From the sequence record NC_070958.1: a stretch of DNA of 64,000 nt. The stretch is one strand, 5' to 3'. Under the pieces are notes generated by a model. The model was not told where the DNA came from and did no database searches. It was given only the letters and a program-made list of their open reading frames with translations. Made by a program: the position numbers and the translations under genes. Of this stretch, positions 100-38,660 are shown piece by piece (position 1 is the stretch's first letter; every line of letters begins with the position of its first letter).

Positions 100-3000
100 A
101 TGTCTGATGAAAAGTTGGGTATCGCTAAACAGGTAATGTCTCATTTGGGAATAGAACCCGAGCAACTTCCCGAGTATATGTTCGACGATAAAACCAAGCG
201 AACCCCATTAACTAATTTGGACGAACGTGTTCTGTCTCATTATGACGAAGAGTCACTGTGGACAATGAAGACAGTTCGTTTCCTTAAAGACTTCTCTAGG
301 TTTAACGCAGGTGTTCACCTCGAGACGAATAACGCCACGTTCTTGCGTACCGCTGAGCTATTCAGGAACATGGGCATCAAGAACTATTACTTCCTTCTTC
401 AAATCAACAACCCTTTGTTGAAGGACGTTAACCCGTGGGATCCTGATCTCACAGACGAACAGAAACTGATGGTTCTTCAAGAAGCCCAGGAGAACGTTTG
501 GTATATCGTTCGTGAGCTGATCAAGATCGACGGTCGTCGTTTCCGTGCTAACCGTGCAGTCATCTCCTTTATATGGAGTTGTCTCAACCACCTTCCGACA
601 CTTATCTTGATGCCTCGTCAGAGTGGTAAGGATCAGGATGGTGAAACGGAAGTTCTCCGTCCAGATGGTAAATGGACAAAGATCAAAGATCTTAAAGTCG
701 GTGATGAGGTGTTGGCTCGTGACGGTACAATTGCCAACATAACAGGCTTCTACCCCCAGGGTGAGCAAGTCAGTTATGAGATCGAATTCATCGATGGTCG
801 TAAAACAAAAGCTGGCAGTGAACATCTCTGGACGATGTGGGATCCAAAGAAGAAGGGTTGGGTCGTCAGGGATACCGAGCACATTAAGGAACGTTTGGAT
901 AAGAATGAAGAAGGACTTTCCATTCCTCTCCCTCTTGAAGATCGCGTCACCAAGAACAAGGACTACGTTCTTCATCCTTATATCCAAGGTGTTTTGTTTA
1001 CGGCCGGTGATAAGTCTGGGCTAACATTCAAAACTGAAAAGAATGATGTCGTAGCCAGGGTTAAGAAACTCCTTACTCGTGGCTGGATCGTTACCAGTAA
1101 TGGTGATCAACACACCATTTCCATGAGAACTGATTACGACCCTACAGTTCATCGTAATGTCAAACAAGCGATGCGTGATTTCGGTATCGCGGATGTTTCC
1201 CCTAAAGACAGAGCAGTTCCGAAAGAGATCATGGAAGGTTCCCACCATGATCGCAAAATGTTCATTCGTGGCATCATGGATGTTGATGGCCATATCGAGC
1301 GTGGCGGCAGTGTCTATTACGCTAGTGCTGGTGAGAAACCATCTGAAACTGTACAACGGTTGTTCTGGTCTATTGGTGCCATTTGTAAGGTCACCAAACG
1401 CGGATACAAGGTTAACGGGGATGAACCTGGTGAACGTATCACTCGATACTCATATCGTCTCAGAGTGCGTTACACGGAGCCTGGTGAGTTGTTCCTTGTT
1501 GATGACCGGAGTTTGCTTGTATCGACGAGGGCTGTGCAATACAACAGCAAACTTTCCTTTAAATCTATCACCAAGGAAAAGAAGCTTAAACAAAGTTATT
1601 GTATCGAACTCGACCATCCTGAAAACTTATACATAACCGACAACTGGATTGTGACACACAACACAGTTGGGATGCAGGTAATGGCATTCATCATGCAGTA
1701 CCTCATCGGTCGTGGATTCAAGGCAGGTCTGATCACCCTTGCTGCATCAAACCGTATGCAGTTTGTTAACGCCATGAAGAAGATCCGTGCTGGTCTTCCT
1801 GAGTACTTGGTGAACGTCACCTATAAGGATAATGACGCCGGTAACATTTTGACCTATCAGGCGTACGGTGCTGAGAATAAGAATACATTCGAAGTCCGTG
1901 TACCTTCTGGTGGTGAAGATGGTGCTGAGAACGTGTCTCGTGGTAGTACGTTTGAAATGCTGCTCTATGACGAGCCGGCGTGGATGAAGTACATCGAAAA
2001 TATCATGAACGGTGCCGGTCCTTCTACGTTGACCGCTCAAAAGAACGCTAGAGAAAAGGGCATCCCTTACTTCACTGCCAAGGCTACAACGCCAAACAGT
2101 ATCCTGAAGGAAGAAGGGAAGTACATGTATGGTGAAATGAAGAAAGCGACAGAGTGGCGTGAAAACTTCTTTGACAGCTATTCTGAATCTCACTTGCTGC
2201 AACGTGTTACCAAGGCTTCACCCGTCAGTACGACCCAACCACATATCTGTATGCAGTTTAACCACCTTCAACTTGGTTTTGGTAAAGACTGGGTTAAGGA
2301 GACTATGGATAAGCTTTCGCTTTCCTGGTCTAAGGCAAAGATTGACTTGTTGATGATGTGGACCGAGGAAGGGAAGAACAAGGTATTCGATGATAAAGTT
2401 CGGGAGCAACTCGCAAACGTTAAACAGGAGCCTCTGTGGAACGAAGAAATTGCCAACACTGGTCTATTCATAGACTGGTATTACAGCAATGAGCGACTCA
2501 ATGAATTCTTCACCGATCCTACTGAATTCTTCTTGATGGGGATGGATACGTCCGATGCGGTAGACCGAGATGCGTGTACGTTGATTATACGGCGAATGAA
2601 GACTGGTGAGAACATTGGGATAGGTCGTTATCCCCGTGCGTTCCTGGACGACGTGACGACGGTTCTGAGGGAGATGATAGTGCGGATTGAAAACAGTCTG
2701 CTGATTATCGAACGTAACCGTGCAGTTGACATGATCGATAAGTTGCTTCTTACTCTTCCAGCTCTCGACATTGATCCTTTCAAACGTATCTTCAATGATG
2801 TCTATCAAGATCCCGTGAAGTTCCGTAACGAATGGAAGGATGTTCAGGAGGTTCATTTCAAGTACCGTACTAAAGAGTTCTATCTGAAATACAAGGAACG
2901 TTTTGGTTTCAGGACGGGACCCTCGACACGACGTCAAATGTACGACTTCCTTCATGAAGCGGTTAACTCCACTGGCGCTGGACTGCGTCACCCAATGCTT

Positions 3001-6006: not shown

Positions 6007-6855
6007 TTAGCGCTTACGAGGAACAAGCATACGGATCTGATCAGCCACCCCTTTGGGATCTGCATAAGCCAGATACTTCTTGATCTCATCCTCGAAGAAC
6101 ATACGGAATTCATTATGGGCGTCTGCGTAACCCTGGATGTCATCCTGGAGTTCGTTAACGCTCACACCAAACTTGGCAACAGCCTCTTGCATCCCTCGCC
6201 GACAGTTGCGGTAGATGTACGCCTTTGTGGCCAGTACACACAGGTATGCAAACTGATCGTACATTTTTGGTGGGATGATTGAGAAGTGCTCGTCGTAGCT
6301 AAGGATTACTTTAGCCAGCATGTTGAACAGTGCCGAACCTGCGTCACGGATAAGGAACGAGTTGTTACCCACCATGGTAAATGACGTGAATGTCCGCTGA
6401 ACGTTACTATCGTCCAAAGCAGAGATCATACGGTTTACCGCAGAGCCCATCGATCCGCCACCACCGCACTGAGGACCTGCAACCAGGTTATAACCGTTGC
6501 TTATCATGGAATTCAAATTACCAGGATAAACCTCGATCACTGAGAGGATGCGTCGACCACCAGTAAGGAAGTCAGGAACGTTGACGTGAACGATACCGCC
6601 TTCCAGGTTCTGTACTTGTGCAGAGCTCAGATCAATGGTGCTAGTTTCACCACCTGCAACGTTAAGAAGTGGAGCGACCATTTTCAGTATCACCTTTTCC
6701 CGGATACCTTGTTCAATAGAGAACTCGGTGTTGATCGGACCCCAGGAATGTCCGTACCCTTTATTAGGGTTGTCAAAGGCGATTTCCAACAAGTAAGGCG
6801 AAATGTCGTTAACGCCGTTTACCACGTTGTCGATCGCAAAATCGACCATATTCAT
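6007..6855 (-). CDS. Conserved phiKZ-like hypothetical/virion protein
   Basis: Start moved to ATG 6855 (GAGGG upstream); same strand and run as the previous gene. Confidence 0.7.
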   Translation of the reverse strand: MNMVDFAIDNVVNGVNDISPYLLEIAFDNPNKGYGHSWGPINTEFSIEQGIREKVILKMVAPLLNVAGGETSTIDLSSAQVQNLEGGIVHVNVPDFLTGGRRILSVIEVYPGNLNSMISNGYNLVAGPQCGGGGSMGSAVNRMISALDDSNVQRTFTSFTMVGNNSFLIRDAGSALFNMLAKVILSYDEHFSIIPPKMYDQFAYLCVLATKAYIYRNCRRGMQEAVAKFGVSVNELQDDIQGYADAHNEFRMFFEDEIKKYLAYADPKGVADQIRMLVPRKR

Positions 6856-7488: not shown

Positions 7489-7520
7489 GCCTCTACTCTC
7501 CGGTTAGGGAGAGTAGAGGC
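7489..7520 (-). terminator. Intrinsic terminator closing the RNA island
   Basis: Minus strand GCCUCUACUCUC-loop-GAGAGUAGAGGC then UUUUAUU. Confidence 0.85.
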
Positions 7521-8385
7521 GATTACTGACGTGTACTACCTTCCCATTACTCACTCACTTCCCGATTATAGATCCGGCCAAAGACCTTATCGGGATCAAG
7601 AGAGTAATAGGCTGATAGCAAGTACGTGAGGGGTTCCAAACGGAAACCGTCACTTCTACCAACTTCCATGCAGAGCAAGCATGGCGGACCGTTCGACTTC
7701 GTTATTAAGGTGCTCTCTGAAGTATAGTCCCCTCAGCTACCCGCCGCGGCCTCAGCCGGGGGTTTTTGCTAAGGGCATCAGCCTTATATAACGTCGTCAC
7801 TGTACTGGCACTAACGAATAGAACCATCGGCGCACGGTTAGGGTACCTACGTGACTCGCGTCCGTTGGGACGGGAGATGGAACTTCCTTATAAAGGAAGA
7901 AAGGGTTTTGAACCCAGGATGCCCTGATCCATTGTAATAGACCATCGCTTCACTCCTTTCATTAGAACCTAGCATGCCTTTTCGGCCAAAATGGTTCATC
8001 AGAGTTACTGTATATGGGAACTGTTCCGTGGGTTCAAAAAGGTATCCCGGACAATGACTAAGTAACCACACTCCACCCCATCAGCGCAAGCTAATGTAAG
8101 GTACGTCACTATCCAGGGAATAGGGCCGAGAACACGCTGTCTTTTAGAAGGATCGCTTTTGAGTGGTAAGTTCACTCATCTACTGCCAACCGACTTCCCC
8201 GTAGGGCTTCGTCTTAACTAACGTGTCTCGGTGATTCGTACTAGTATCTATCTGGTATGTTTGACACCTTGGGTATCATGGCAAACAGCCTAGGATTAAC
8301 CTATGTACAAATATAGTTGAGAGTGTAAGTAAGAAACACGGTAACAGGAGGCGGAGAAACCGTATGAATACACTTACACCCTCAA
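7521..8385 (-). ncRNA. Candidate large structured ncRNA (~850 nt), family not identified
   Basis: No credible ORF; many helices including a 10-bp perfect long-range pair (7906-7915/8030-8039) and a UACG tetraloop; downstream of tRNAs, ends at terminator. Confidence 0.65.
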
Positions 8386-8387
8386 AG

Positions 8388-8465
8388 GGTGAGAACTCCT
8401 GGAATCGAACCAGGGCAATCCCGCGATGGGTTGTGCGGGCGACTTTCCTTTCGTCTTCAGTTCTC
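8388..8465 (-). ncRNA. tRNA-like element with aberrant anticodon arm (pseudo-tRNA)
   Basis: Acceptor GAGAACU/AGUUCUC, T-arm CCUGG-UUCGAUU-CCAGG, D-arm GAC-GAAAGGAAA-GUC, stem CCCGC/GCGGG with 10-nt loop ACAACCCAUC; ends ACC(C). Confidence 0.7.
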
Positions 8466-8467
8466 GT

Positions 8468-9174: not shown

Positions 9175-9234
9175 TGAATATGGAGCCGACTAACGGAATC
9201 GAACCGATGACCTACTGATTACAAGTCAGTTGCT

Positions 9235-9333
9235 GGTGCCGGTCCTTCTACGTTGACCGCTCAAAAGAACGCTAGAGAAAAGGGCATCCCTTACTTCACT
9301 GCCAAGGCTACAACGCCAAACAGTATCCTGAAG
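9235..9333 (+). repeat. Exact 99-bp copy of terL 2011-2109
   Basis: ggtgccggtcc...cagtatcctgaag identical at both loci. Confidence 0.97.
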
Positions 9334-32520: not shown

Positions 32521-32665
32521 GTAAACCTCGTTGATTTAATTCTTCAAAATAGTTTCCTATTATATGTAAACAAATGTCAAGGAGTAATCCTTGGCTTTGC
32601 GCGGGAGACGTCCGTCTTGTAATAAATCTGGTACAAAAGATCGTTAAAAATTGACGTTCTATAAA

Positions 32666-38444: not shown

Positions 38445-38594
38445 ATGTTTGAAGCAATGTCCAACTCCCAAGCTTTCGGTTTCGCTTTCTTCGGTGCTAT
38501 CGGCGTAATCGCTGTTATCGCTATCGGTACCAATGAATACTTCAAAGCCAAGAAAGCTCTGAAGCGTCCAATGGCTACTCGCAACAAGCGTTGA
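38445..38594 (+). CDS. Small single-pass membrane protein (49 aa), not in ORF track
   Basis: GAGGT upstream; MFEAMSNSQAFGFAFFGAIGVIAVIAIGTNEYFKAKKALKRPMATRNKR; own promoter motif and terminator. Confidence 0.75.
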   Translation: MFEAMSNSQAFGFAFFGAIGVIAVIAIGTNEYFKAKKALKRPMATRNKR

Positions 38595-38599
38595 TATCA

Positions 38600-38622
38600 A
38601 CCCTCTCCCATTGGGAGAGGGT
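38600..38622 (+). terminator. Stem-loop of the ACCCTCTCCC/GGGAGAGGGT family
   Basis: accctctccc-att-gggagagggt. Confidence 0.75.
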
Positions 38623-38660
38623 AGTTTCAATTACATTTATTTTTTTTTGTCGAGGTTCAT

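Follow-up and report, generated by a model that had tools for sequence, protein, structure and literature searches.

The 64-kb window analysed here, a stretch of 64,000 nucleotides (nt) from sequence record NC_070958.1, is the first part of the genome of Aeromonas phage D6, a jumbo phage of 260 kb (Ludhianavirus). Between a thioredoxin-like gene and a DUF4234 gene it holds approximately 1 kb without a credible gene, and this interval specifies a real, conserved, strand-specific, non-coding and modular RNA structure of about 980 nt, which runs on the minus strand from 8466 to 7489 (positions are those of the window). From 5' to 3', the D6 RNA comprises a tRNA-like cloverleaf, a long hairpin, a multi-helix portion of about 530 nt (RNA-1), a pseudoknotted portion of about 330 nt (RNA-2) and an intrinsic terminator. 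A preliminary description, made from the letters of the stretch alone, had proposed that a lack of Rfam hits combined with significant covariation would make this a new RNA family. Both came out so, and the D6 RNA is a new family of a known general kind, of which no description was found in the searchable literature.

Fold and non-coding character

Folding no better than that of dinucleotide-shuffled controls had been named in the preliminary description as an outcome which would speak against a structured RNA. The minus-strand RNA 8390-7485 lies far beyond such controls, with a minimum free energy (MFE) of -333.6 kcal/mol vs -270.4 +/- 8.5 in the shuffles (z = -7.44). For the plus strand, the corresponding score is z = -2.80.

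The earlier judgement that no credible open reading frame (ORF) is present also holds. All six frames contain stops (13-23 per frame, with a longest open stretch of 77 codons), 3-base periodicity is absent from the substitutions relative to five homologues, and the indels relative to these homologues are mostly (80-87%) not multiples of three. A Pfam search of the interval returned nothing above threshold. RefSeq places a coding sequence here, gp006, a 40-aa hypothetical protein at 7547-7669 on the minus strand, which falls inside the covarying P_b and P_c helices of RNA-2 described below. It is unannotated in phage LAh10 and uncalled in every homologous contig, where the only gene call in the region is a 42-aa one on the opposite strand in contig L046. 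We regard gp006 as probably a false gene call.

Homologues and covariation

Phages D3 and D9 are identical to D6 across the RNA interval, and LAh10 is 98.7% identical. When the phage collection and the first 27 loci were searched with the D6 RNA by BLAST and nhmmer, only near-identical Ludhianavirus sequences, the tRNA-like element and terminators were returned. Homologues of the D6 type were instead reached via the flanking DUF7484 gene, by a protein search of Logan and ENA assemblies (71-85% identity), and reside on contigs L042, L041, L040, L044 and L046 from uncultured phages. With nhmmer, L042, L041 and L040 match the D6 RNA at E 1e-71 to 5e-38, while profile matches to L044 and L046 have E values of 6e-37 and 3e-22; identity between L042 and the D6 RNA is about 62% over 1 kb.

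RNAalifold was run on a seven-sequence alignment, not structure-aware, of six distinct D6-type sequences. The consensus fold contains 125 pairs, among which 55 show double changes that compensate each other, and its energy is -96.9 vs -29.8 +/- 4.7 in column-shuffled alignments (z = -14.3). The RNA-sense strand scores better than the opposite strand (-96.9 vs -76.9), with G.U in 14% of paired cells. Covariation, which the preliminary description had put forward as a check, is thus abundant across five diverged homologues, and each part of the RNA is significant in its own right, as follows:

tRNA-like element: alifold z -11.9; 7 of 16 pairs covarying; slid controls 0-2
RNA-1 (8388-7856): alifold z -6.5; 24 of 44 pairs covarying; slid controls 4-8
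RNA-2 (7855-7521), D6-type sequences only: alifold z -4.4; 16 of 36 pairs covarying; slid controls 3-5

At shorter range, 11 differences separate D6 from LAh10, eight of which are unpaired, two keep a pair and one breaks a pair. Two long-range helices offered by RNAalifold (8241-8231/7545-7533 and 8069-8060/7556-7547) were rejected: double compensations in them are few or lacking, and they are incompatible with P_c, a local hairpin whose covariation is seen in every lineage.

Parts of the D6 RNA

8389-8466, minus: tRNA-like cloverleaf, directly 3' of the thioredoxin stop codon; MFE cloverleaf of -27.1 kcal/mol
8317-8385, minus: long hairpin, found in the D6 MFE and centroid structures; sequence varies between relatives
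8127-8241, minus: H1 three-way module of RNA-1, with outer helix 8230-8220/8138-8127 and conserved flanks on both sides
8204-8180 and 8178-8160 (loop GAACUUACC), minus: inner hairpins of H1, enclosed by the outer helix
7856-8126, minus: remainder of RNA-1, including the H4 domain (8038-7907)
7521-7855, minus: RNA-2, the widely conserved 3' module, with P_a, P_b, insert hairpin and P_c
about 7850-7826, minus: P_a hairpin, loop CCCUAACCGUG
7684-7679/7671-7666, minus: P_b hairpin, with 4 covarying pairs
7653-7626, minus: insert hairpin of the D6 lineage, within RNA-2 and before P_c
7611-7602/7552-7543, minus: P_c long hairpin, with inner helix 7595-7589/7566-7560
7489-7520, minus: intrinsic terminator, with a 13-bp stem (8 G-C pairs), a 6-nt loop and a U-rich tail

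The helices listed in the preliminary description were all found at their positions. Pairing is perfect in the 10-bp complement 7906-7915/8030-8039 and in 7560-7566/7589-7595, 7666-7671/7679-7684 and 8161-8165/8173-8177; 7545-7552/7602-7609 has seven Watson-Crick pairs and one G.U on the RNA-sense strand; and 7640-7650, 7883-7899 and 8197-8206 are hairpins. Several of these are among the best-supported elements of the consensus, namely the 10-bp closing helix of H4 (8038-8029/7916-7907, 7 of 10 pairs covarying), 8178-8173/8165-8160 (5 of 6 pairs, by RNAalifold) and P_b. Covariation was further seen in the H1 outer helix (4 of 11 pairs, by RNAalifold), the inner hairpins 7943-7938/7931-7926 (4 of 6) and 7901-7896/7889-7884 (2 of 6). 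The terminator that had been proposed is likewise real and occupies 7520-7489 on the minus strand. What required revision was the extent. A folded non-coding RNA of about 800 nt had been described with 8316 as its limit, some 150 nt too few at the 5' end. The molecule is encoded on the minus strand and begins further upstream; the hairpin 8385-8317 and the cloverleaf 8466-8389 belong to it.

In the cloverleaf the acceptor stem is of 7 bp, the D stem of 3 bp and the anticodon and T stems of 5 bp each, the T loop being UUCGAUU, so that the element shares the arms of a tRNA (RF00005). It differs in an anticodon loop of 10 nt rather than 7 nt; CCA is not encoded. Neither ARAGORN nor the Rfam tRNA model called a tRNA on 8389-8466. 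Chaoshanvirus phages, AhC3_1 and the D6-type contigs keep the element, and its arms covary. The L044 copy has a 7-nt anticodon loop and is the only homologue called by ARAGORN, as tRNA-Ile(GAU), and a true tRNA occupies the same position in N1M2, Yubaba, CF8 and L044. A scan of IMG/VR for the D-arm motif of the element gave nine chance matches, all of which lack a T arm and were not called as tRNAs. Hairpins stand at the position of the long hairpin in L042, L044, L046, ZPAH34, CF8 and AhC3_1, and the long hairpin is absent from L040 and L041.

In the D6-type alignment, covariation is seen at 7 of the 13 terminator pairs, and a hairpin of this type closes the locus in all related phages. The type (CCUCUACUCUCC ... 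GGAGAGUAGAGG) also follows other genes, at L026:6583-6637, L042:5860-5907 and L009/L010 ~6450-6500, and a further copy lies at 211784-211823 of the AhC3_1 record. It has the look of a terminator consensus used throughout the genome, and not of a structure specific to this RNA.

RNA-2 across related jumbo phages

An unannotated gap of 0.7-1.3 kb follows the tRNA cluster, just upstream of the DUF7484 gene, in relatives of D6. The loci considered were those of PS1, Kc263, Survivor, SXP01, N1M2, OBP, pEt-SU, Yubaba, AH04, CF8, ZPAH34, AerS_266, AhC3_1 and several metagenomic contigs. Their DUF7484 proteins are 60-73% identical, and in many of them a thioredoxin gene stands 5' of the gap. The 5' domains of the gaps fall into at least four unrelated sequence groups, while RNA-2 is common to a clade of OBP-like jumbo phages, whose kinship with OBP is closer than that with EL and the Erwinia RisingSun group.

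A covariance model (CM) of the 3' module of the Kc263/N1M2/OBP lineage (group A), termed R1, matches the PS1-type and AhC3_1 RNAs with E values of 1e-5 to 1e-3, always just 5' of the terminator. A D6-type profile, in turn, matches the 3' modules of AhC3_1 (E 9e-10) and CF8 (E 1e-7). The frame CAGCCUA ... UGGGAAG of P_c is common to D6, AhC3_1 and CF8, and the helix sequences differ yet stay complementary. In a 16-sequence alignment of the P_b and P_c core, 90% of cells are paired, vs 39-47% with the partners slid, and 24 of 35 pairs have changed on both sides, a figure reached by none of 500 shuffles; these values are to be read with the knowledge that the alignment leans towards structure, since it was fitted to the model.

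The loop of P_a carries the motif ACNGU, complementary to a second ACNGU upstream of P_b, and a pattern search found the middle position to be C-G, U-A or A-U across 19 loci. D6, inspected by eye, has the C-G form: ACCGU in the loop (7838-7834) is the complement of ACGGU at 7692-7688, and the two would form a pseudoknot. A competing extension of P_b also tolerates the changes in ACNGU, and either pairing, or both, is compatible with the data.

A loose RNA-2 pattern was also run against IMG/VR and GTDB genomes. Among the matches listed were many unrelated contigs and taxa, and these were judged to be chance. A weak full-length R1 match within the window (38516-38635, minus strand, 15.2 bits, E 0.18) is probably chance as well. 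Upstream of a more distant DUF7484 gene (44% identical, on a 252-kb contig), L020:2409-3485 is an ORF-free gap of about 1.08 kb; this locus has no tRNAs and was matched by neither R1 nor the H1 model R2 introduced below, and a hammerhead-like core lies on its opposite strand at ~1300-1332 (minus), further upstream of the gap. Genes for HNH homing endonucleases occur at varied points of the tRNA and RNA region (L042:1298-1774, L046:1320-1823, L002:2806-3309, L006:2290-2877 and L022:2387-3439), and in pAEv1810 one is located between RNA-2 and the virion gene.

The variable 5' domain

A second covariance model, R2, was built on the H1 module of D6 and matches Chaoshanvirus phages at E ~1e-3. PS1-type phages possess a related H1 module with the same GAACUUACC loop. 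H1 is therewith common to three Aeromonas-phage lineages, at differing places among the tRNA genes, and the copies in Chaoshanvirus and PS1-type phages sit between tRNA genes, not beside RNA-2. Structured RNA modules have therefore been shuffled within the tRNA cluster. Copies in Chaoshanvirus and Ferozepurvirus phages were located at L025:2513-2581, L027:2343-2479, L028:2272-2427 and L002 ~2445-2540, embedded in inter-tRNA spacers of 300-400 nt, which are further regions of strong folding.

The Kc263/N1M2/OBP lineage possesses an unrelated, well-conserved RNA-1 of about 600 nt, which in N1M2 and Yubaba lies downstream of tRNA-Met and which ends in a type I hammerhead:

L003:4563-4645, and also L004, L005, L006, L008-L012, L029, L030 and L045: type I hammerhead with core, stems and pseudoknot

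Carriers include Kc263, N1M2, OBP, Survivor, SXP01 and pEt-SU. At 12 of 12 loci the hammerhead combines an invariant CUGANGA...GAAA core with GUC as the cleavage site; stems I-III covary, and there is a pseudoknot of loop II with stem I. Its 3' neighbour is RNA-2 or, in Survivor, SXP01 and pEt-SU, the terminator directly. The Rfam model (RF00163) scores it at 16.6 bits vs a threshold of 34, because stems II and III are long. Judged by their sequences, these would constitute a new set of natural hammerheads, bona fide in appearance. A search with the core pattern recovered it in 10 related loci, and not in the D6 locus, L040-L044 or L046. A CUGAUGA at ~7990 of D6 was considered as a hammerhead-like candidate and rejected, as it is not conserved in the homologues.

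Genomic setting

All genes around the RNA interval are on the minus strand, and in this orientation tRNA-Asn, tRNA-Asp, tRNA-Trp, the thioredoxin gene and the RNA follow one another, the RNA forming the distal end of the D6 tRNA cluster:

9174-8755, minus: tRNA-Asn, tRNA-Asp and tRNA-Trp, upstream of the thioredoxin-like gene
8731-8468, minus: thioredoxin-like gene, between the tRNAs and the RNA
7417-6959, minus: DUF4234 gene, downstream of the RNA terminator, with its own start

The DUF4234 gene is followed by the gene for the DUF7484 virion protein and then by a thymidylate kinase gene. A terminator scan of the minus strand found none from the tRNAs down to position 7520, so that a single transcription unit is plausible.

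Rfam calls a fourth tRNA at 9184-9257 (minus; 30.3 bits vs a threshold of 29), which is reported by neither ARAGORN nor RefSeq and could represent either a degenerate tRNA or another element of the tRNA-like kind. The motif GATCTTTTGTA stands immediately 5' of the DUF7484 virion gene (6892-6882, minus) and is kept, with small variants, upstream of this gene in all relatives. It lies just 3' of the terminator in L002-L006, L040-L042, L044 and L046; in D6, the DUF4234 gene separates the two. A second exact copy is found at 32632-32642 (minus). By its position, the motif could be a phage promoter or an element of a 5' untranslated region.

Comparison with known RNA families

Slices of 1.5 kb and 0.39 kb from D6, for which the search filters are lax, were compared with Rfam 15 at gathering thresholds and at E <= 10. 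Only tRNAs and noise were returned, with no GOLLD, ROOL, ribozyme or riboswitch match at E <= 10, and the outcome was the same for ten related loci. The likeness to GOLLD and ROOL drawn in the preliminary description consequently stands as an analogy (a phage RNA of 0.8-1 kb beside tRNAs, with a conserved 3' and a variable 5' part), but not as family membership, for which the Rfam model offers the one objective test. GOLLD and ROOL are its closest known analogues, and the agreement with GOLLD is striking.

GOLLD occurs near tRNA islands and downstream of tRNA-Met, and has a conserved 3' and a variable 5' region (10.1101/2024.12.08.627333). With GOLLD (RF01998), the D6 RNA shares phage or prophage origin beside tRNA islands, a length of about 0.8 kb or more, pseudoknots, and a tRNA immediately upstream or embedded; D6 has three tRNAs and the tRNA-like element immediately upstream on the same strand. 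The division into a 3' region that is conserved and a 5' region that is less so is, for the D6 RNA, an architectural resemblance only. The D6 RNA differs in having no covariance-model match at any threshold tried, in being hosted by jumbo phages of Gammaproteobacteria, and in having relatives that carry a hammerhead between the two halves. ROOL (RF03087) is likewise an ornate RNA of phages and of large size, which is often encoded close to tRNA genes, contains several pseudoknots and has no known partner protein; in contrast to it, the D6 RNA gives no model match, is longer and clearly modular, and has modules which move relative to tRNA genes between lineages.

Phage T4 offers a parallel in position. 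Its tRNA cluster includes stable RNAs (species 1 and 2, rnaC/rnaD) of about 120-140 nt, which are co-transcribed with tRNAs and matured by tRNA-processing enzymes. The D6 RNA, by position and strand, would similarly be an RNA gene, other than a tRNA, which closes the tRNA cluster of a phage, although the T4 RNAs are far shorter and the processing of the D6 RNA is a prediction. Cloverleaf handles which define the ends of RNAs are familiar from the mascRNA element of MALAT1 and from mitochondrial tRNA punctuation. The D6 element resembles these as a non-decoding cloverleaf at the boundary of a long non-coding RNA and could recruit RNase P or RNase Z; it differs in standing at the 5' side of the long RNA and in a bacteriophage, and its cleavage is predicted only. 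The features of a type I hammerhead (RF00163) are present in the Kc263/N1M2/OBP lineage, where cleavage is predicted, and absent from D6 and all D6-type RNAs.

Proposed role and alternative explanations

The interpretation which we consider rather probable is that the D6 RNA and its relatives are stable RNAs which are co-transcribed with tRNAs, released by tRNA-like or ribozyme punctuation, and active in trans. The tRNA operon and the D6 RNA would be transcribed as one precursor, which host RNase P and RNase Z would cut at the tRNAs and at the tRNA-like element, while the hammerhead of the relatives would cut itself. Discrete, compact and stable RNAs would be released in this manner, their 3' ends protected by the terminator hairpin. 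Once mature, they may act in trans during infection, as may GOLLD, ROOL and the stable cluster RNAs of T4; they would then be scaffolds made of RNA, or would bind a partner connected with tRNAs or translation. More tentatively, and as a possibility to which we give less than even weight, they may represent a class of RNAs not described before, large, modular, pseudoknotted and specific to jumbo phages of the OBP/Ludhianavirus kind (relatives of phiKZ), which reached a GOLLD-like plan independently, matures through tRNAs, tRNA-like elements or hammerheads, and during infection forms either an RNA-only assembly or a machine directed at tRNAs or translation.

Several points weigh against co-transcription and action in trans as set out here. 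The D6 transcript, its ends and its stability are predictions from sequence. Between RNA-1 and RNA-2 no cleavage element is recognisable in D6, and one RNA or two are both compatible with this. That RNase P or RNase Z would cleave a cloverleaf which lacks CCA and has an anticodon loop of 10 nt is plausible at most, and transcription in these phages is probably carried out by RNA polymerases of their own. Survivor, SXP01 and pEt-SU are without RNA-2, which is therefore dispensable in some phages. The link of D6 to the other lineages is carried by the profile matches to AhC3_1 and CF8 together with shared motifs; the R1 match to D6 is partial, covering P_b (7660-7691, E 0.26), owing to a hairpin of 45 nt that is inserted ahead of P_c in D6. 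Lastly, helices in the variable regions are poorly defined by an alignment of six sequences that is not structure-aware.

Among other explanations, RNA-2 with its terminator might be a cis-acting attenuator or riboswitch-like leader which controls read-through into the virion-protein operon. In most relatives RNA-2, the terminator and the DUF7484/virion operon follow one another directly on the same strand, and ACNGU can pair, with covariation, either with the P_a loop or with the strand that follows P_b, two pairings which exclude each other, as they would in a switch. However, antiterminator pairing with the terminator stem is not evident and the terminator hairpin is generic, occurring after other genes too. 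A cis-regulatory role is further made less likely by the DUF4234 gene, which in D6 intervenes with its own start between terminator and virion operon, by the three phages which keep that operon without RNA-2, and by the HNH gene inserted between the two in pAEv1810; we consider it unlikely. Alternatively, the D6 RNA or one of its domains could be catalytic, for instance a self-cleaving or tRNA-processing ribozyme. The hammerhead at the RNA-1/RNA-2 junction of a related lineage speaks for this, and size, pseudoknot and multi-way junctions are typical of ribozymes, but D6-type sequences have no hammerhead core and no Rfam ribozyme match at E <= 10, and no invariant core comparable to those of known ribozymes was identified in them, which leaves catalysis quite unlikely.

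It is very unlikely that the D6 RNA is a highly diverged GOLLD or ROOL beyond the reach of the Rfam models. Lifestyle and layout would agree with such an origin (a phage RNA of >800 nt beside tRNA islands, with conserved 3' and variable 5' parts, pseudoknots, and adjacent or embedded tRNAs), but neither the D6 slices nor the ten related loci gave a match at gathering thresholds or E <= 10, and no common sequence motif was recognised. Strongly disfavoured, and the least probable of the explanations considered, is that the interval is non-functional debris (decayed tRNAs, or remnants of introns and homing endonucleases in a recombination hot spot) or a mis-annotated coding region. The tRNA-like element does descend from a tRNA-Ile-like gene, HNH genes have been inserted into the region in several relatives, the 5' domain turns over between lineages, and RefSeq annotates a 40-aa ORF within the interval. 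Against this stand pairing kept by compensatory changes across sequences which are about 60% identical, folding specific to one strand, the absence of codon periodicity, mostly frame-breaking indels, and homologous contigs devoid of gene calls save the opposite-strand call in L046.

Significance

Large ornate non-coding RNAs are rare; GOLLD, ROOL, OLE and raiA each began a line of research, and recent cryo-electron microscopy has revealed RNA-only cages. The D6 locus adds a family to those borne by phages, while also correcting the annotation of a gene, gp006, which is probably not one. The family is found in cultivable phages whose hosts are common in the laboratory, namely Aeromonas, Klebsiella, Kosakonia, Serratia and Pseudomonas fluorescens. 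It includes natural 'knock-outs', in the form of three phages without RNA-2, and others in which modules are rearranged among the tRNA genes, while the tRNA-like handle and the hammerhead, as built-in processing elements, predict the ends of the mature RNAs. Together, these properties make it testable why phages keep giant structured RNAs beside their tRNA genes.

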